Source: Octopus bimaculoides
Lineage: Eukaryota
Reading direction: 5' to 3'
NCBI RefSeq assembly: GCF_001194135.2
Contig: NC_068994.1
Location: 20,808,215 to 20,872,214 of the forward strand
DNA: 64,000 nt
Part shown: one piece after another, positions 1 through 63,510 of the stretch
Position numbering within the stretch: position 1 is the first letter of the stretch
Layout: each line of letters starts with the position of its first letter
The notes under the pieces: generated by a model
Databases searched by the model: none
Told to the model about the DNA's origin: nothing
What the model saw: the letters and a program-made list of their open reading frames with translations, nothing else
Made by a program: the position numbers and the translations under genes

Positions 1-1384
1 AAAAACTAGTCTGTAGGGCATAAAACAGCTGGGAATCTTTGCTACAAAGCATGAAAGTTTTGGTAGATATGTATTACCTGATTATTTTATAAGCCTCAAG
101 AAATTCCTTTTTTTTTAATAATACTTTTTGATTTCTTTATTCTTGAAGCTCTGTAGTGCTTTATCTATATAAATCTTTCAGTCTTTTTAGAAACTGGAGA
201 TTTTGATTTAGTCCAATATAAAAAATAAATTGTTAAAATATAACTATTGCATGAACTTGGATGAAATTTACTGATGTGATATAATCATTAGTAAACATTA
301 TGAATGCAGTTTTTACTTATTGTCATGTCCTTTCACCTACCAAGGGAGGGTGAATACAGTTAAACTGATTACTGGACATTGATTTCCTAATTAAATCATT
401 AATAATCAATAAATTACTAAAAAATAACATCCCTATCTTCTAATTCACTGCTGGCGTTATTAACAATTACTAAGCTTGAAAGTAGAGAGAAGGAAATCCA
501 GAGAAATTTATTTGATAAAGCAGAAAAAAAATATACACAGGGCATCTTTTGACAAGAAGTTCTTTGTAAAATGAAGCTAAACTTTGTTTCTCACAGAAAA
601 GAGTACTTAATTCTAGTTTTTGACTTTCAAATAACAACACAATTTGATCTATGATTTTGTGTGGATTAAGATTTGGCAATAGGTGTACATATCTGCAGAA
701 CAAGATTTTATCTTAGAGTTAATTACATTTTTTTCAAGCATGAGAGAAGCTAATGTAATTTGCAGTTTGATATACAACTTAATTCTGTTGTAATGTTTTT
801 GGTCAACTTTTCTTTTTGATGGAAGTTGGAATTGTGTTTATGGCCTTCACTTACCAACTAAGACTGATAAAATCAGTGCAGTTCCTTCTTGAACAACTAA
901 GTTGATGACTGCAGGAAAAACATGGAGATAGAGAAAATTTCATCAAGTCATTATTCTGCAGAAGGACTGATATAGTGGTTAGTTCAGGCCTAAGGTGATG
1001 GATAAAATAAGGGTGACGAGGGAGTTGGAAGATGGTGGCACAAGACCAACTAACTCTCAGTCGTAATAGAAGAGAGCATATGTGAATGACTTTTATTTAC
1101 TTTTCTATACTTTATTGAATTTTTGACAGTTTTTTTTATCTAGCAATTCCTGAAGAATAGCATTGTTTGTTGTTGTATTCCAACAGATAATTTACTGATT
1201 TGTTAGACCAATCGATTCATAATGGTGAGAGAAGCAAAGGGAGCATCTGTACCTTGGTGGAATTCATTTGAAGAGCCCCATTCTTTTTTTCTTTTTTTTT
1301 TTGATTTTACACTCTTTGCCAATCTATGGCAAAATATACATGCAAACACACACATGTGTGCACACACGCACACACACACAGACA

Positions 1385-7015: not shown

Positions 7016-8933
7016 ATTTATTTGCTATTTGTTTCTAATGTGGCAAGCTAGCAGAAACGTTAGCATGTTGGACAAAATGCTAAGTGGCAGTTTACTGGCT
7101 CCGTCTTCTAAGTCCAAATATCACTGAAGTCCATGGAATGTATACATTATAGAGACACTATAGAGGACTTTGTCTTTTTGTAGGACATCTAAAACAAGGT
7201 TTATAGACATATTCCCTTTCCAAGCTATACTGGGATGTATTGAATGCAGCACTTATGACTCACTTGTTAAATATATATTGCTACCACTGCTAATTTACTT
7301 AACAGTTAGATTGTTGTTCAGCCCCATGTCAGGCCTTTTTGAGAGGACCTTTGATCAAATACATTCCAGCCACGAGCATTTCATTTTTTCATCTAGTGTG
7401 TGTGATTTTGAGGGAGATTTGATTGCTCTGTTGAGTAGACTGAGTAACTGCACAGAGACTTCTTTGTTGGTTTGACTTAAAGCCAGGTTGTGTAGAACTA
7501 ACAGATTTGGTTGTAAACACAATAATACCATTCTGGATAGCGATGGTCATTATTTTGATTATTTCATTTGATTTAGTCATTTGTGGTCCCAGTCAATAAT
7601 ATATTTCAGCAACAACAGAAAGAAAAGGAAAGCTCTGTGCATGGAAAAAAGTAGGCAGTTTTGGAGTAAACGGTAAAGCACAAGATGGCATCTTGTTCAA
7701 TGTCTCATGGTTCTGTGTTTAAATCTTACTGGTATTTGGTTTACTGTTGCAGTTTACTTCTATTGTTGATATGTTAGAATTTAATATTTACAAAAATTGA
7801 CATTTTATATGTCAGCAGAAACTATCAGCTAGTTAGGGAGGATACATGCCATACAACTGTGGTAAGAGATAGTTTCCTGGTGGGTGGTCAACATTTACCA
7901 GCTTTGATTCTGTTTTTAACCATTTCTCTTCAGTTACATATCTAGACTTTTGAGAAAGGCATGCATATCGCATAATTCCAACATCCTTCCCTATATTTCT
8001 GTTGAACTTTAATAACATTAATAACAAACATCCAGTAACATCAGCACTTAAATAAATTCTTAGCCATGCTAAGATTCCTTTCAATCATTAATACTCTTGG
8101 ATGAAGAATGACAGTTACAGCTCTCCTATTTTGCTACTCTTTAAGAATATCCTGATAGGTAAGTTATTATTTATGAAGGCAGATAAAACCAATAGTTAAG
8201 AATTTGGCCAATCCTTCCCTCATTAACTGAAAATGATCAGTTGATGATGTTCCATTGAAAGGAAGCTAACAGCTATTTGCTTTTGTTGTAGTTGACTAAC
8301 CCCCAACCAGACCTCATTGAGCGAACCTAGGGTCAAAAGTGTTCCTGTCACAACCATCAACATGAACTGTCTTATTTTGAAAACAGGAGGTTGTGGTTTA
8401 AAGGAGGATTGGCTGTTATTTCTACAAGGTGGAACAACTACACAATAACCTACCTAATTAGACCATTGCATTTATTGCTATAATAATGATTCATATAGGT
8501 CACACATTTATGGAGGAGTAGATATTGACGTATATAGAGTAGGAAGGGTTTACAGCGCCTGGAAGAAAATACAATTTTTGCACTCCCACCTTAATTAACT
8601 GGCGTGTCCGTCGCCAAGGAGATGCACTGGACGGCGCTGCTCCACCTTACTATTCAATGGCGTACCCTCAGATTTACAGTGATACACTTATTTCTAAACT
8701 CCACTTCAGCATTATTACAAATTATTGCCCACCCAGAATATTCTGAAGCATCCCCTGGCACCAAAGTCTGGCGACGAGCCTGTTGACGGGTGCGATAAAC
8801 AAGTTGAATATCTGACTATATCTGACTGCTGTTTATAGCATGTTGTTGACCGCTTAAACGCTCTCTTGTTGGCCACGAGTGATTATGTTGTCTTTTGAGT
8901 AAAGCATTATACTCTTTGCTACTAAGATTATCT

Positions 8934-9170
8934 AGTTCTATATTTAAGAGATGAGGAATTATTTACATTATTTACATTATCTACATTTGACGGATATTCG
9001 TCCTCATCTTGTTTGTTGTTAACACAACGTTTCGGCTGATATACCCTCCAGCCTTCGCCAGGTGTCTTGGGGAAATTTCGAACCTGGGTTCTCATTCCTA
9101 TCGATGTTACTATTATTATTATTATTATATTATTATTAATCAGGTCGCTGCCGTGAATCGAACTCGTGTC
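8934..9170 (-). mobile_element. Second, inverted copy of the hammerhead SINE-like element (A box missing, longer 3' end)
   Basis: 8963-9110 is the reverse complement of 9931-10078 at 146/148 nt. On the - strand it begins with B box GAGTTCGATTCACGGCAGCGACC, then (AAT)n, and ends ...AATTCCTCATCTCTTAAATATAGAACT. Confidence 0.8.
9021..9066 (-). ncRNA. Minimal type I hammerhead ribozyme copy with core mutation (CUGGCGA, A6G)
   Basis: Reverse complement is identical to 9975-10020 except at 9058, which changes the conserved A6 of CUGANGA. Confidence 0.75.
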
Positions 9171-9262
9171 ACAGCTTTGCGATGTTCTTCTACCCTTATT
9201 TTGAGGGGGCGAAATGTTTCGCCTTTGTATAACCTACCACAGCTGCATGGGATGGAGTACAC

Positions 9263-9743
9263 NNNNNNNNNNNNNNNNNNNNNNNNNNNNNNNNNNNNNN
9301 NNNNNNNNNNNNNNNNNNNNNNNNNNNNNNNNNNNNNNNNNNNNNNNNNNNNNNNNNNNNNNNNNNNNNNNNNNNNNNNNNNNNNNNNNNNNNNNNNNNN
9401 NNNNNNNNNNNNNNNNNNNNNNNNNNNNNNNNNNNNNNNNNNNNNNNNNNNNNNNNNNNNNNNNNNNNNNNNNNNNNNNNNNNNNNNNNNNNNNNNNNNN
9501 NNNNNNNNNNNNNNNNNNNNNNNNNNNNNNNNNNNNNNNNNNNNNNNNNNNNNNNNNNNNNNNNNNNNNNNNNNNNNNNNNNNNNNNNNNNNNNNNNNNN
9601 NNNNNNNNNNNNNNNNNNNNNNNNNNNNNNNNNNNNNNNNNNNNNNNNNNNNNNNNNNNNNNNNNNNNNNNNNNNNNNNNNNNNNNNNNNNNNNNNNNNN
9701 NNNNNNNNNNNNNNNNNNNNNNNNNNNNNNNNNNNNNNNNNNN
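9263..9743. other. Assembly gap
   Basis: N run. Confidence 1.
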
Positions 9744-9825
9744 ATAGCATATGGGAACCGGTATTGAGGAAAGATAGAAAAATAATAGATTTATAAGCCT
9801 TAAAATTCACCCCATAATTGCCCAC

Positions 9826-9898
9826 GGGCATATGGCGTAGTGGTTAAGAGCGCGGGCTACTAACCCCAAGGTTCCGAGTTCGATTAATAATAATAATA

Positions 9899-9930
<32 letters not shown>

Positions 9931-10078
9931 GTAACATCGATAGGAATGAGAACCCAGGTTCGAAATTTCCCCAAGACACCTGACGAAGGCTGGAGGGTAT
10001 ATCAGCCGAAACGTTGTGTTAACAACAAACAAGATGAGAACGAATATCCGTCAAATGTAGATAATGTAAATAATGTAA
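9826..10078 (+). mobile_element. tRNA-headed SINE-like element carrying a hammerhead ribozyme
   Basis: Head GGGCATATGGCGTAGTGGTTAAGAGCGCGGGCTACTAACCCCAAGGTTCCGAGTTCGATT (A box 9833-9843, B box 9876-9885, resembles tRNA-Arg ACG), then (AAT)n, HHR body and a TAATGTAAA repeat tail. First T4 is at 10089-10092. Confidence 0.8.
9975..10020 (+). ncRNA. Minimal type I hammerhead ribozyme, intact core
   Basis: GACAC (stem I 5') - CUGACGA - A - GGCUG gaggguauau CAGCC (stem II) - GAAAC - GUU (cleavage triplet, cut after 10015) - GUGUU (stem I 3'). Stem III is reduced to the palindrome ACGU, as in Penelope-associated minimal hammerheads. Confidence 0.85.
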
Positions 10079-13000
10079 GATTATCTAATTTAAAATATCG
10101 TCAATCGTATGAAAAATATATGACAGTCTGTACATTCATGTCCATTGCTTTCTCCCTCTCTATTTGTGTGTGTGTTCATGACTGAGTGGTAACATTAAAC
10201 AAATATACATTTGGATTTTTAAATTAAAGAATAAGATGTTTCGATATGAACTGTTGTTTTCCTCCCTCAGTACGAACCATCACCTTTATAGTTCGAGTTG
10301 GATAAAACTCTTCTATATAAATTTATAGTATCGAATGTAATTAGTTGATAAGTTAATATAAATATAGGAGAAAAAGAAAACAATTGACAGGCACACGCAA
10401 AAGAAAAAAATGTCAATAATTAACTAGACAATCTTTCAAATAATAACCATAATAATTTCGTAGATTGGTGACACTAATCGACAAGTCGTAGAGGTGATGG
10501 TGGAAGTGGTACAGTTGCGTGTGGTGATGACGGAGACATTGTTTAGAATCAATTGAGCAGACATTTGTTGAAATGATTCCAATTATGACCACTCTACTTT
10601 GGTTTTAGGGACAGTGTATCTAGGACCACATCATTCAATGCGTCCTTCTTTTTTTCTTAATTTTTAGCGATAAGATGTGGTTTGAAGTAAATTTTATTGC
10701 TATTTCTAGCCAGTTAGTCTTGATCAACCAAACATGTGATTAAGGTTAGTTGAATTGGGGAAATATTCAGACACATTCACGAAAATAAACAAAAGATTTT
10801 TTAATGTTTCACAACTTCTAAATTATATTAATGTCATACTTTTAATACTACGTACCTCAAAGAACAGCTGTTTGTGCGCGTGTACGCGGACCCACCCACC
10901 TAACATGCATACATACATACAATTTGTCTGTTAACTACATCTCAAGGATGGAGCCTTGTATCTTTGTTGGAAACTGGCTCCCTCCTCAGTGGTAGATTTA
11001 TAATAATTAAAAAAATAAAAGAGATATACATACATACCTATCTATCTGTTTGTCTATCTATCTATCTATCTAATTGAGGCTAGCTTAATCTTCATAAAGG
11101 ACGAAAGATAAAGCTGGCATCAGCATCTCTTCATTTTTCTTCAGAATAAAATTAAAAAATAAATATGCAGCCACTGACATTGTTTCATGCAGAATTCAAA
11201 TGCTTCCCTTACCAACATTCTACTATAATTGTTATCAGAAAATGCGAGTGAGAGATAAAGAAGAAAATATGTCAAAACTTTGATGGAGTTGGGGGTTTAG
11301 AGATGAAGTGAGATTGGCGAATAGAGTTACTTCCCTTCGTCTGAGTCAGCTCAAAAACTTTGTGGGAGGATGAAGAAAGTTTTCTGAATCAGACTTCCAT
11401 TTACACTTACCATCCAGACTACGTCACCCTAATACATGGAAATACTCACTCGTGCGTTTCTTGGTGTTAAATCATCTACGTTCTATTAACTTAGTATTTC
11501 ATCCTCAAAGTTTTTTTTTTTGTGTTGTTCTACCAACCATCTAATGTTGATATTTCATGCGAAAAGTTATTGAGGTAGGATGTTGAAAAACTATTTCTCA
11601 CTGTCAGTTGTCCAGTATGAATGTGTGTAGTCGCATGCACGATGACATTTGTTGTTTCATGAAAATTCGTGATGAGATAATACTCTTTTGATTGATGTAA
11701 TTTTATTTAACGCTTTTACGCTCGCCTATGCCACTAACTTCTGTGAAGAGGGAAATGTTTTTAGAAGTCCTTAGGAAGAATGAATTGGCATAATATTTAG
11801 ACTTGCGGACAAAATATCTGTTGTTTTTTTAGACACTGTCTTTTATCTTCTGAGGTTAAGTCTCAACTTTCTGGAGTCATTAAAATGTAATACCAGTCAA
11901 GTTCTGGAATTGATTCCTATAATATATAGATATGAATGAAATTGTAACAGAAAAGATATACATATATAAACACACACAGATATGTGCCTTCTTTCTAAAA
12001 GCTTCGCCCTTAACCCCAGAACTCCGTTTGTCACACAATCCTTTTTTACGGATTTAAAATGTAGACAACTAGTTTCATCCAAGTACCCTCGGAATCATAA
12101 TTTGACACATTTGCACAACAATCGCGCTTTACTTCTAAAACTCCAGTCAGATTCTGTGATTATGTCAGGATTCTGTTGTGAATTTTTTTCTTCTTCTAAG
12201 TCTCATTTCCCTTCCTTCCTTTTCGAATACTTTAAATAATGTCTGTGACACCAAATTACTTGATGTTGATATGTGTCAAAATTAGCAGTTTCCAGGTTTT
12301 TTTTTGTTTTTTTTTTGTCTGTCTGTCTTATAATACTACTGAAATTGAAATGAAATGTGTTTAGTGTGTGCCTATGTTAAAATGATCATTGATATAGTTA
12401 TTTCTAACAAGTCCAAAGTTTTCAATCTGGAATTATGCGAAGTTCATAAATATTACTTATTTTGTAATTTAGCTGCTTGAATTAACAACACTTCTCTCTC
12501 TCTCACAGTAAATTTTCAGACACCCGCACGATTTTTACTAAGAAAAAAAAAAAAAAAAAAACAACTCGGATTTTTTGCATGGAATCAAGTATCCTGACCT
12601 CCTAATATGCTGCAAATCCCTTATTTTGGTTCGGAAAAAGTGGGGGCGAAGGGGGTCCCCTTCTCGGATTTATTGGAATTTTTTTTTTTTTTTTTTGCGT
12701 TGAATGAATTCCTGTGACATCCTAATATGCATTAGGTTAAGAAGTTCAGATTATTTACAGAAAATGATAATAAATCAGGACTCACAGTTGGAAATCATTT
12801 TATAAACTTGACCAACTTAGATTTGGGCTCAACGACACTGATGAGTATACTTTCATTGGTTGACGCTTTAAACTTTTGTTTTTGAAATATAGAACAATCA
12901 TATTTCTTGATCTTTCGGTGTATATTTAGTCTCCTTGTATTGTTTCTGTTTCGTTTATTTCAATAACTGTAGAACTACTCCGCAGTTGATTACTTTTTCT

Positions 13001-18105: not shown

Positions 18106-18614
18106 CTTTAAACCGTTTCAGTTATATTACTAATGTCCTCAAGGAAAGCGTAATCATCATAACTTCTCATACCTTCTGTATCTCTTAGAATTCTTTGACT
18201 TCACACAAATTTAGTAAATCGTTACAATAAGTGATGGTTTGTTGGAACAGTAAAATGTGGAATGGAATACCATGTGCTGTTTACGTTGTGCCACTTCTAT
18301 AGATTTTTACATGAATAAAGTCAGAGCATTCAATACATACAGTGAAATATATTAAACGATATAATTCATTGGTGATAATTCATCATGAATTATAGTTTCA
18401 TATCCTGGGAAGCTGTTTAATCAATAACTCAGCCTCCATGAATTGTAATTTTTTTGTTGTTGTTTCCAGTATTGTATTATGAGTTTGAAATATGATAATG
18501 GGTGTAACTCATTACATATTTTATTCAGGGTGAGTTATTTCCCTTGGGTTAACTAAAAATGAAGTGGGTGCAGGTTTATGATGAGTAAGGAGGAAGGGTT
18601 AAATAAACTACTAT

Positions 18615-18888
18615 TCTTGTTGTTTGTTCCTTCTCAAGTTATGCCTGGCTCATAAAGGCCAGTTTCCTGGGTTTTATTGGCATATAAGTTCCCCACCTGG
18701 ACGGGATACTGGTCTGTTGCAGGTGAGCTGCTAGATGCAGGAAGAAAGGGTGAGAGAAAGTTGTGGCAAAAGAGTAAGTAGAAGTTCGCCATTACCTTCT
18801 TCCGGAGCTGTGTTTCACTCATAAACGCACACATTGCCCGGTCTGAGATTCGAACCTGCGATCCTTCCACTAGGCCATATGCCTCCAC
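18615..18888 (-). mobile_element. tRNA-derived SINE (family D, tail type 1) with a perfect 15-bp TSD
   Basis: TAAATAAACTACTAT at 18600-18614 and 18889-18903. The - strand head has TGGCCTAGTGG (A box) and GGTTCGAATC (B box) with the anticodon arm deleted; ends in an (AAC)-type tail. Confidence 0.85.
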
Positions 18889-21071
18889 TAAATAAACTAC
18901 TATATGATAGTGAAATTATGAAGTTATCAGTAAGTGTACTGTTATATGATATAGTAGGATAAAGACAAAAAAAGAGATAGTGTGATTGCTCCTAATAAAT
19001 AGTTTAGTATTAATCCATTCACTCAGTTAGGGACATAATCTGCCAGTGTTTCGATATATATTTACTGATGTATTCTTTCAAAAACTAGATGTAATTGGAT
19101 TGTTTTGTTCCGCTTTTCTGTATTTCTGATAAAAATAAATACAGCTGAAATATTGTTGCTTAAATTTACATCTACCATACAACTTACTCTACAAAGAATA
19201 TCACAACTCCATCTAAATAAACATTATATGAAAGAGTTACTGAATAAGGTAGATTTAGTTAAATGCATGTGCTAGAAATTTTTCATCTATGACCCTCAGA
19301 TCATGAATAGTAATGTTACTTTAATAGAAAGACATGCAACTGTCAAGGATTTAAGGATATTAGAACCATTAAAATCTGACTCCTTAGTTATGATATCCAA
19401 AATATATTCCATAAATACATCAATACAAAACAATAAGAAACAAAACTTCTTGCTATCAGATAAAACAAAAAACCTTTTTACAGCAGTAAATAGTTCCTAT
19501 AACAAACTCTTAAATAAGAACATTACAGATATACAAGATATTTAATAGAAATATCATTAAGAGTAGTTATAGTTGCACCAAAAAATCATTGCTGCTTTTA
19601 TAGCCAATATAAGCAAAAGAGAACTTCTCATTACAAACATACGAAACTCTCCTGTGTGTAATTCTATAATTCCCAAAACCCTAATATCTCAGTTTCTATT
19701 TCTAGCAAGATGAGCAACCATTTAGAGGCTCTCATAATTAGCTGTTATATATATATGAATATTAATCAGTGGTTAACTTCAGTAGAAATTTTTCATATAC
19801 TAAAGATGTCTTCTGTTTCTTATTTCTTACTCTTATTGTTTAACCTCTGGTAATCCTAGTTAAGCAAATAATTCTGGCCATCCAGTATCCTATTTTGGTT
19901 TGTTCTTAAAGTTAGTAAAATGTGATTTGAGAGAGACTTGACTACTATTTCTAACTGCCAAATGATCATGCCTTTTTGTGGAATGAGAGTTAAATTTTCA
20001 GGCCAGGGTGGGTGGGGGCACCCTAATACATTCGTCTGATGTATGAAATCACAGTTCATTAACAAAGGTACTACTATTTTATGTTCTCACTTCAAAAATT
20101 GAAAACAGCCAGCAGTCTCTTGTTTTCCCGGCTGTTCATATTTGCTTCCATGGCTCACAAACACAGACTACTGATTTAGTGATTGTTATAACAAGTGTAA
20201 TATGTGTGTTTGTGTGTATAAAAAAGCTCTGCTTTTTTGACAGTAATGCTCAATTTTTTTGCCCATCATGATCTCATAGTCTCTCTTTTTTTTTTCTTTT
20301 GTCTGCCTCTTCTATAATTTCTATAATTTACATCAATGTCCAAAATTTGCTAATTATACTTGAAGCCCTCACATTAAATCAGTCTCAGTGTTCTATTTTT
20401 CACCTTAAAGTCCCACAATAAGCATCAAATACAAAGTTTTAATTCTAAAAACTACTGTATTTGCAATACATTAACTCCCAAATTTTCAAACTCTACATTA
20501 ATTGTACACAACAGTACTTATCTTCTCCATCTTCTTGGTTCAGTAGTTCTTATCTCATCCTCAAAAGTACACTGTTTCTCTGCTAAAAAATACTTGATCC
20601 TCAGTTCTTCATTCAAAAGGAATTGTTCACTACTGTTAGTTGTGAAAGCCCAGTAGAATTAACTAGTTTCATTAGCTTAGTGTATTTCCTAAAGGTTTAG
20701 CTTAAAGACGGATGACTTCAGCATGGAGAAGGATAGGCTCAGTTATTAGAGACACTTTAGGTACAACACACTGAGTCAAATTTTGCTGTATACTAATAAT
20801 ATATGGGTTACCTAGCAGCTACTTGGTAACTTAATAGGAGCTGCTGTTCCTATTAAGAGTGTTACCTTAAAACAATAAGGAAGATGCCTCACATTTCCAA
20901 ATTCAATTACTACTAAGATGGATTTTTGCTTCACAACCAATGAAAATAAGTCTTTAACATAAGTATCCAAAACACACCAAGTTTTGTTACCTCCCTCTTT
21001 TACGAAAAGCACTTTTGTCTTTTTTTTTTTAAAGCAAAATATTTATTACTTATTTTTCTTTTGTTATCCAG

Positions 21072-62889: not shown

Positions 62890-63510
62890 GGAGTTCAGTA
62901 CCTTTTCTGCTTGGGGATTATTTCTAAATGTTCAGTCTATTAATGTTTTCTGTTACTGCTTCGTCTAGGCTCAATCTCTTTCAGTGCTGGCACATCGAAC
63001 ATGTCATAAAGCACTTCCATTGAAATTTCCTTCCTTTCTTCTGTATGTGTGATTTTTAATTGATTTAGGTGGCGTTTATGCTCCCATCATTGGCCTTTCA
63101 TTAAATACATCATATTTCCAATTCTTTTAGTCACTACACCATCCTGCCAACTCTCTTTACCATTCTTGTATACTTTCAAATGGACTTTGTTTCTGACATC
63201 AAAATGTTTAGTTGAATTTTTTGTATTTTCTCTATACGTTTTTTTCTTTGGCAACAATTTAATCTTTTGAGCAAACATTAGTTCTGCAGGCGATTTGCCT
63301 GAACTGGTATTCAGATTGGGTATTGTTCTGTACACCCTTGAAAATTTAGTTAGCACTTCATCATTTCTTAACTCGTTACTTGCTTTTTTTAGTACTTGCT
63401 TGAAAGCATCTACAAATCGTTCTGCTTGCCCATTTGACCTTGGGTGGTAGGGCAGGGAAAACATGTGCTTGACTACATGCATTTTGCAGAATTTTTTAGT
63501 TTCAGAACAT
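62890..63510 (-). mobile_element. Ty3/Gypsy pol remnant (integrase core and C-terminal region)
   Basis: ORF 63087-63482 has PYHPRSNGQAERFVDAFKQ, YRTIPN..SGKSPAELMF and WQDGVVTKRIG. Another frame continues KRHLNQLK...PRRSS. Confidence 0.9.

Follow-up and report, generated by a model that had tools for sequence, protein, structure and literature searches.

A tRNA-like sequence and hammerhead ribozyme in Octopus bimaculoides very probably belong to the 3′ end of a Penelope-like retrotransposon insertion

A 64,000-nucleotide (nt) stretch of Octopus bimaculoides DNA (contig NC_068994.1, positions 20,808,215 to 20,872,214 of the forward strand; here called the window) contains a tRNA-like sequence followed by a hammerhead ribozyme (HHR), and this locus raises the question of what kind of element the two parts belong to. 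An earlier note, made from the sequence alone, had read positions 9826 to 10092 as a free, ribozyme-bearing short interspersed element (SINE) with an RNA polymerase III (Pol III)-defined 5′ end, or else as a retrozyme, and had suggested a Penelope-like reverse transcriptase (RT) as the machinery that mobilizes it. Our analysis indicates with high confidence that 8935 to 10078 is a single insertion of a Penelope-like retrotransposon (PLE), made up of two 5′-truncated copies in inverted orientation whose junction lies inside an assembly gap. The feature described in the earlier note is the 3′ untranslated region (UTR) and terminal repeat of the right-hand PLE arm.

Self-BLAST of the window showed that 9902 to 10078 recurs on the minus strand at 9138 to 8963 with 98% identity, across a gap of 481 N. 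This inverted second copy, 8935 to 9166 (minus strand), had been absent from the earlier note. A target-site duplication (TSD) of 9 bp, GATTATCTA, is present at 8926 to 8934 and 10079 to 10087 and encloses both arms (plus strand, ..GCTACTAA-GATTATCTA / element / GATTATCTA-ATTTAAAAT), which argues for a single PLE insertion of the usual inverted-twin type. The right arm consists, in order, of the C-terminal end of an open reading frame (ORF), a TATA-like block, a tRNA-derived module, an (AAT)n spacer, the hammerhead, and a terminal block. In the left arm, a GIY-YIG endonuclease (EN) fragment is joined by an internal deletion to the 3′ portion of the tRNA-like module; then come (AAT)n, a hammerhead whose A6 is changed to G, the terminal block, and a 28-nt extension. 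An inverted 5′-truncated copy beside the element and an optional tail of 30 to 40 bp at one end only have been described for PLEs (PMC8557442, PMC11167929). The inverted twin, the one-sided tail, the TSD, and the minimal-type hammerhead (min-HHR) place four PLE hallmarks within 1.1 kb. The 28-mer follows the tail with 96% identity at two places in L029 and two in L030, two of the related loci described below, and is missing from the right window arm and from copy L029_A; in all, 5 copies have it and 2 do not.

Assembling inverted repeats is difficult, and both arms stop exactly at the gap edges. On these grounds, the inverted duplicate could, like the juxtaposition, be an artefact of assembly around the gap. 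We regard this explanation as extremely unlikely. The arms differ by 3 substitutions, an 18-nt indel, the lengths of their (AAT)n runs, their upstream sequence, and the 28-nt extension carried by one arm, and differences of this kind make duplication during assembly improbable. In addition, the 9-bp TSD flanks the pair, and the same architecture occurs in long-read assemblies (L027, L028, L029, and L033). Short-read assemblies are known to be interrupted where PLEs have inserted in inverted or tandem form (PMC8557442).

Both protein-coding remnants at the locus point to a PLE. The left arm encodes the endonuclease fragment VYSIPCSCGRLYKGETFRPLKIRVEEHRKAVTR, for which an exhaustive phmmer search returned 167 matches with homology ending at residue ~34; a word-indexed protein search with the 40-amino-acid EN fragment returned no candidates. 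The fragment (33 amino acids) bears a VY..YKGE..R..EEH motif, the long matches have RVT_1 ahead of this motif, and Pfam calls GIY-YIG on one distant match, P0140. A profile built from the phmmer matches recovered 629 relatives, whose contigs were fetched; among the resulting loci, L029 is from Octopus vulgaris and L030 is from O. sinensis (accessions checked in PMC10700109). The DNA of the window's EN fragment is 91% identical to L029 10058 to 10154, which lies within an intact EN frame. In the window, the endonuclease is broken after ..AVTR, and an internal deletion joins the rest, via CGAG microhomology, to CGAGTTCGATTCACGGCAGCGACC of the tRNA-like T-arm.

On the right arm, the DNA at 9745 to 9825 shares 87 to 89% identity with the ORF end and UTR in L029 and L030. 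Because this homology reaches from 9825 as far upstream as the edge of the gap (9744), position 9826 is no element border. The proposed unit of 9826 to 10092 was thus misplaced on both sides: its left side runs on into PLE ORF and UTR, and on the right the element ends at 10078, with 10079 to 10087 being the TSD. In L029, the intact EN frame ends in ..NSIWEPVLTKG and a stop codon, and it is followed by ..TTAGATTTATAAGCTCTAAAAT.., GGGCATGTGGCGTAGTGGTTAAGAGCG.., spacer, hammerhead, and terminal block. A PLE ORF end and UTR precede the tRNA-like head in all four forward copies for which upstream sequence is available (window, L029_A, L030_b, and L030_d). The distant PLEs L028, L033, and L032_b and the degraded L027, with ORFs only ~55 to 60% identical, have the stop codon followed by the TATA-like block, the tRNA-like module, the spacer, the hammerhead, and then the tail, and inverted arrangements are also found in the long contigs L027 (two ORFs head to head), L028, and L033. 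RVT_1 is present in the same ORF at related loci. The suggestion that a Penelope-like RT is the machinery is supported, and Penelope-like elements sharing this 3′ end, for which the earlier note had proposed a search, were found.

These data bear directly on the SINE interpretation, in which a Pol III unit of ~265 nt, combining a tRNA-like head with a PLE-derived hammerhead tail, would be mobilized in trans by a PLE. Several features are compatible with such a unit: the A box is perfect and is spaced from a B-box-like motif as in a tRNA, a TATA-like block lies ~30 to 35 nt upstream of the head, and head and tail are linked in several copies, as the earlier note had expected. The linked parts are parts of PLE 3′UTRs, however, with ORF end and UTR before the head in each of the four copies named above, and the TSD surrounds the inverted pair rather than the 265-nt unit. 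In a census of all matches to two 3′-region queries, chained over ~246 kb (window plus L027 to L038), the 5′ ends of ~24 copies fell upstream of the head, in the T-arm, after the head, in the hammerhead, or in the terminal block; none started at the first base of the head. (A word-indexed protein search with the reverse-strand ORF across tail, spacer, and head, meant to sample other head-plus-tail copies, gave no candidates.) A T4 terminator had been placed at 10089, where only TTT is found; the first run of at least four T's after the head is at 10216 to 10220, beyond the element. A genuine free SINE does occur in the window, at 18610 to 18895 (minus strand), and it has its own TSD and no HHR. 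A free ribozyme-bearing SINE at 9826 to 10092 is therefore very unlikely. The tRNA-derived SINE at 18610 to 18895 is ~270 bp long, with a 14-bp TSD (TAGTAGTTTATTTA) and a head reading GGCATATGGCCTAGTGG..GCAGGTTCGAATC; its first 17 nt resemble the PLE tRNA-like module, which may descend from such a SINE.

Four observations count against assigning the locus to a PLE insertion. No RT sequence is assembled in the window by tblastn, its expected place being the N gap; Pfam makes no GIY-YIG call on the 40-amino-acid fragment or its closest relatives, so that this assignment comes from the motif and the distant match P0140; and the census loci were fetched via PLE proteins and are biased to PLE-bearing places, so that a derived SINE family in other parts of the genome may have been missed, although no result of the analysis supports one. 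The fourth is a snap-back copy, L029_B (L029 11790 to 12140, minus strand), which turns 3 nt upstream of the first base of the module, as if a short RNA began there, a point that would also suit the SINE interpretation. In L029_B, a reverse-complemented, partly deleted tRNA-like module is joined to forward CAC-GGGCATATGGCT, after which the copy continues through (AAT)n(AAC)n and an intact hammerhead to the 28-nt extension. The coordinates of all features of the insertion are collected in Table 1.

Table 1. Features of the inverted PLE pair and its borders (window coordinates)
Start	End	Strand	Feature	Basis or remark
8926	8934		Left target-site duplication, GATTATCTA	Same 9-mer lies immediately next to the inverted pair on either side
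8935	8962	-	28-nt PLE "tail" extension, ATAATTCCTCATCTCTTAAATATAGAAC, on this arm only	Same 28-mer in L029 and L030
8963	9020	-	Post-hammerhead terminal block, inverted copy	98% identical to 10021-10078
9021	9066	-	Hammerhead of inverted copy, core CTGGCGA (A6 to G at 9058)	Alignment; pattern scan
9067	9142	-	Pre-hammerhead block, (AAT)n spacer, and TGATT linker of inverted copy	Alignment, TRF
9143	9166	-	3′ part of tRNA-like module (T-loop, T-stem, acceptor-like CGAGTTCGATTCACGGCAGCGACC)	Without counterpart in right arm
9164	9262	-	PLE GIY-YIG endonuclease fragment, VYSIPCSCGRLYKGETFRPLKIRVEEHRKAVTR, running into gap	phmmer; DNA match to L029
9263	9743		Assembly gap, 481 N, hiding the junction of the inverted arms	Self-BLAST
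9746	9796	+	PLE ORF C-terminal end, SIWEPVLRKDRKIIDL and stop	Translation; matches ..NSIWEPVLTKG and stop of P0012 in L029
9787	9825	+	Conserved 3′UTR block, TATA-like TTTATAAG at 9790-9797	Shared with related loci
9826	9884	+	tRNA-derived module of PLE 3′UTR, 3′ side truncated	A box 9833-9843; B-box-like 9874-9882
9885	9930	+	(AAT)n microsatellite spacer	TRF; length and composition vary among copies
9931	9974	+	Pre-hammerhead block including GTTCGAA (9958-9964)	Invariant columns, 8-UTR alignment
9975	10020	+	Intact minimal type I hammerhead; predicted cleavage after U 10015	Matches PLE min-HHR features (PMC4209133)
10021	10078	+	Post-hammerhead terminal block; element 3′ end on right arm, without 28-nt extension	Self-BLAST, alignments
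10079	10087		Right target-site duplication, GATTATCTA	Same 9-mer as at 8926-8934

The hammerhead of the right arm had been described as a complete minimal type I motif of the dimer-cleaving kind that marks Penelope-like ends, and all of its parts can be read as such. Stem I pairs GACAC (9975 to 9979) with GTGTT (10016 to 10020), followed on its 5′ side by CTGACGA (9980 to 9986) and an extra A (9987); helix II pairs GGCTGG (9988 to 9993) with TCAGCC (10002 to 10007), followed by GAAA (10008 to 10011) and C-G-T-T (10012 to 10015). A scan of the 64-kb window with the core pattern gave 1 intact match against 0.03 expected. By definition, the min-HHRs of PLEs have no loop on helix III; their 15.2-16.2 pair is palindromic, one nucleotide stays unpaired between A9 and 10.1, the G10.1-C11.1 pair is conserved, helix I is 4 to 5 bp long, and the motifs frequently come in pairs on opposite strands (PMC4209133). 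The octopus motif has an unpaired A at 9987, G9988-C10007 as G10.1-C11.1, a palindromic ACGU at 10011 to 10014 without loop III, and a helix I of 5 bp. The repeat tail and spacer noted earlier were also found by TRF, the tail as a repeat of 9-mers at 10054 to 10078.

An Rfam search with Hammerhead_1 (RF00163), which the earlier note had proposed as a check, gave no match on 456 nt of the window, either at gathering or at an E value of ≤10. The model expects a helix III loop, and we therefore attribute this result to a limit of the model and do not count it against the motif; in L031, an intact relative scores 12.3 bits, with that loop deleted, against a threshold of 34.

In the inverted copy, the essential A6 of the hammerhead core is G (CUGGCGA), a change that is inactivating as judged from the sequence. 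The PLE copy at this locus is dead. Self-cleavage of a local transcript is unlikely, given the absence of an assembled RT, the location of the two hammerheads on opposite strands, and the mutation in one of them.

The earlier note had also raised the possibility of an animal non-LTR (long terminal repeat) retrozyme, in which a tandem HHR repeat gives rise to small circular RNAs. The HHR is of type I, the sequence is AT-rich, and PLEs and retrozymes co-occur in other molluscs (PMC7229834). Against this, the two HHRs are on opposite strands and are of the minimal PLE type rather than the canonical type I with loop-loop contacts found in retrozymes. TRF detected repeats of 3 nt and 9 to 10 nt only and no head-to-tail repeat of a 170- to 400-nt unit, and without a tandem direct repeat the locus is not that of a retrozyme; we give this interpretation almost no chance.

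Covariation of the hammerhead was examined in a set of 15 homologous tails of PLEs. Pairing of helix II reaches 93% in this set, compared to 13 to 52% in slid controls, and one of its pairs is C-G in 7, U-A in 6, and U.G in 2 tails. The covariation score is 0.203, compared to 0.136 in shuffles, and 0 of 500 shuffles reached it. In stem I, only the inner three pairs are general. Covariation, which the earlier note had proposed to test in both stems, is present in helix II. Greater conservation of the core than of its flanks had also been proposed as a test, and it was observed between subfamilies, where the hammerhead is the best-kept block of the UTR (identity of 0.70, compared to 0.39 to 0.63), but not among young octopus copies, where the hammerhead is no better kept than its flanks (0.79, compared to 0.69 to 0.90). 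Only about a third of copies pass a strict hammerhead descriptor. This pattern is as expected from selection on active master copies combined with neutral decay of inserted copies.

For comparison of architecture and stem I, we used 26 HHR loci on unrelated metagenome contigs, which had been fetched with the helix II and core pattern and include none of this PLE family. These have the same architecture and a different, mostly complementary stem I. A tRNA-like module upstream of the HHR was found in 1 of 20 unrelated metagenome loci (L016, where the context is ambiguous). This tRNA-like head, on a non-cephalopod contig (L016 ~640 to 700, minus strand; TGGCACAGTGGTTAAGGCGCTCTGCTACTAATCGGGAGGTCGCGGGTTCGATTCC), has the same CTACTAA loop as the octopus module; inverted HHR tails lie on its two sides, and a min-HHR follows ~300 nt downstream. 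A scan of viral contigs for the hammerhead found 0. A second hammerhead type is present in L028 at ~105 to 138 (minus strand), on a 7-kb contig shared with a PLE; it reads CTGATGA-GGCGTAATAACGCC-GAAA-CACGTG-TC, its stem I is 6 bp long, and its helix III is palindromic. In L031, a hairpin directly 5′ of the hammerhead (11799 to 11844) gives a subthreshold match to the Rfam histone 3′UTR stem-loop (19.9 bits; E = 0.005), which is probably due to chance.

The tRNA-like head had been described as carrying both A and B boxes. Its A box, TGGCGTAGTGG (9833 to 9843), is an exact match to TRGCNNAGTGG. The B-box-like AGTTCGATT of the right arm is cut short by the (AAT)n run and is full in L030_b (AGTTCGATTCC); the segment matching 9143 to 9166 of the left arm continues the tRNA-like module in L030_b and L030_a. 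ARAGORN predicted 0 tRNAs in the window and in L027 to L036 (10 loci), and Rfam gave no tRNA match at gathering or at an E value of ≤10 on the 456 nt of the window, nor on the full 73-nt module of L030. The D-loop and anticodon loop presumably resemble tRNA-Ser(GCU) at least as much as the tRNA-Arg(ACG) named previously. Homologous tRNA-like modules are found in the same place in L029_A, L030_b, L030_d, L028, L033, and L032_b. The TATA-like block, ~30 to 35 nt upstream of the module, is shared by the window, L029, L030, L028, L033, and L032_b and takes the form TTTAATAG in L027. Module and block are conserved parts of the 3′UTR of this PLE lineage. Full-text literature searches turned up no paper tying PLEs to tRNA-like modules.

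Whether conserved as a passenger or as a working part of this 3′UTR, the module invites the question of function. We consider it possible, though rather doubtful, that the module and the upstream TATA-like block form a working part of the terminal repeat. In favor of a working part, the position of the module is kept in subfamilies whose ORFs are only ~55 to 60% identical, its A-box and B-box parts are kept at 0.59 and 0.55 compared to 0.39 for the middle, the turning point of the L029_B snap-back is only 3 nt away from the module on its upstream side, and a different tRNA-like piece is found at the same position in L031. That piece (TTGGTGGTCTAGTGGATAGCG...GGGTTCGAATCC; L031 11650 to 11720, PLE P0041) lies ~12 nt past the stop codon and ~110 nt upstream of an intact min-HHR whose core starts at 11829. 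In one form, the module could act as a Pol III promoter for short RNAs that combine tRNA-like sequence and hammerhead and have the RT entry site at their end, and every truncated copy could then be a potential built-in SINE gene. It could alternatively provide a TFIIIC or Pol II start site for the next tandem unit or a processing signal for RNase P or RNase Z. The motif GTTCGAA in the pre-hammerhead block is invariant in 8 of 8 aligned 3′UTRs (window and positions in L027 to L033) and occurs as three repeats in L028; it looks like a second B-box-like element or a protein-binding site.

The arrangement of the two arms is consistent with published PLE work, from which we infer the following course of events. 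The GIY-YIG endonuclease of the PLE would nick the target, and the RT would prime on the nick. The RT may then start at one of two internal sites near the RNA's 3′ end, so that some copies carry the 28-nt tail and others lack it; the one-sided PLE tail has been explained by a choice between two internal sites at which the RT can start (PMC11167929). A template switch would produce the inverted twin. The hammerhead, having a self-complementary ACGU and no helix III of its own, is predicted to cut only when two copies pair, and such pairing in longer-than-unit or tandem PLE transcripts may trim the RNA to unit length. Published min-HHRs did not cleave as monomers and cleaved weakly as dimers (PMC4209133), and HHR mutants left PLE insertion in vitro unaffected (PMC11167929).

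Deletions like that of the left arm recur. In four independent copies (window 9164 to 9166; L030 ~7150, minus strand; L036 ~10270; and L034 ~5950), the deletion starts in the same ~45-nt endonuclease-coding stretch, HRKAV(V/T)RGDIEKSGI, with its other end in the module's 3′ half or at the hammerhead's 5′ edge. The shared start looks like a hot spot for RT template jumps. Splicing was rejected as the origin of the EN-to-T-arm junctions, which are without GT/AG borders and differ among copies.

Elsewhere in the window, a 131-amino-acid ORF at 63087 to 63482 (minus strand) contains, as read from its sequence, a motif (..PYHPRSNGQAERF..) of the kind typical of integrase cores in retroelements or transposons.

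The outcome is mostly a correction of annotation: the striking combination of a tRNA-like head and a ribozyme is an ordinary PLE end, and the hammerhead is of a type already described for PLEs in 2014, not the mark of a new ribozyme-bearing SINE. The insertion offers a clean cephalopod example of the four hallmarks in compact form and illustrates why such insertions leave gaps in short-read assemblies. Of specialist interest is the conserved tRNA-derived module in the 3′UTR of an autonomous PLE lineage. If the module does drive or process transcripts, it would suggest a route by which ribozyme-bearing SINEs like Sm-alpha could arise from PLE ends.

Among known systems, canonical endonuclease-containing (EN+) PLE clades such as Penelope/Poseidon share with the octopus element the GIY-YIG-type EN fragment, ORF end, TSD, and assembly break, as well as the min-HHR, the inverted 5′-truncated twin, and the optional ~30-nt tail at one end (Cervera & de la Pena 2014, PMC4209133; Craig et al. 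2021, PMC8557442; Frangieh et al. 2024, PMC11167929). The octopus 3′UTR differs in what separates the stop codon from the HHR, namely a TATA-like block and a tRNA-derived module with A and B boxes, which the PLE papers searched were not found to mention. Sm-alpha of Schistosoma, said to go back to Ferbeyre et al. 1998, is reportedly a free, high-copy short element with a canonical HHR. In Sm-alpha, too, a short stretch holds a hammerhead together with a promoter sequence of the tRNA-type Pol III kind, whereas the octopus stretch is the end of a copy of an autonomous element and its HHR is of the minimal type. Animal non-LTR retrozymes (Cervera & de la Pena 2020, PMC7229834; Li et al. 2026 preprint, 10.64898/2026.07.22.740005) are also HHR bearing and related to PLE terminal repeats but form tandem arrays giving circular RNAs, and the octopus locus has no tandem unit. 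The nearest analogue is Helenus/TRIMp3 (Kojima 2024, PMC10886601), in which a tRNA-derived promoter-like segment, probably acquired by SINE insertion, lies inside a retroelement terminal repeat; those elements are nonautonomous LTR elements, whereas the octopus carrier is an autonomous PLE lineage in which Pol III use is putative.

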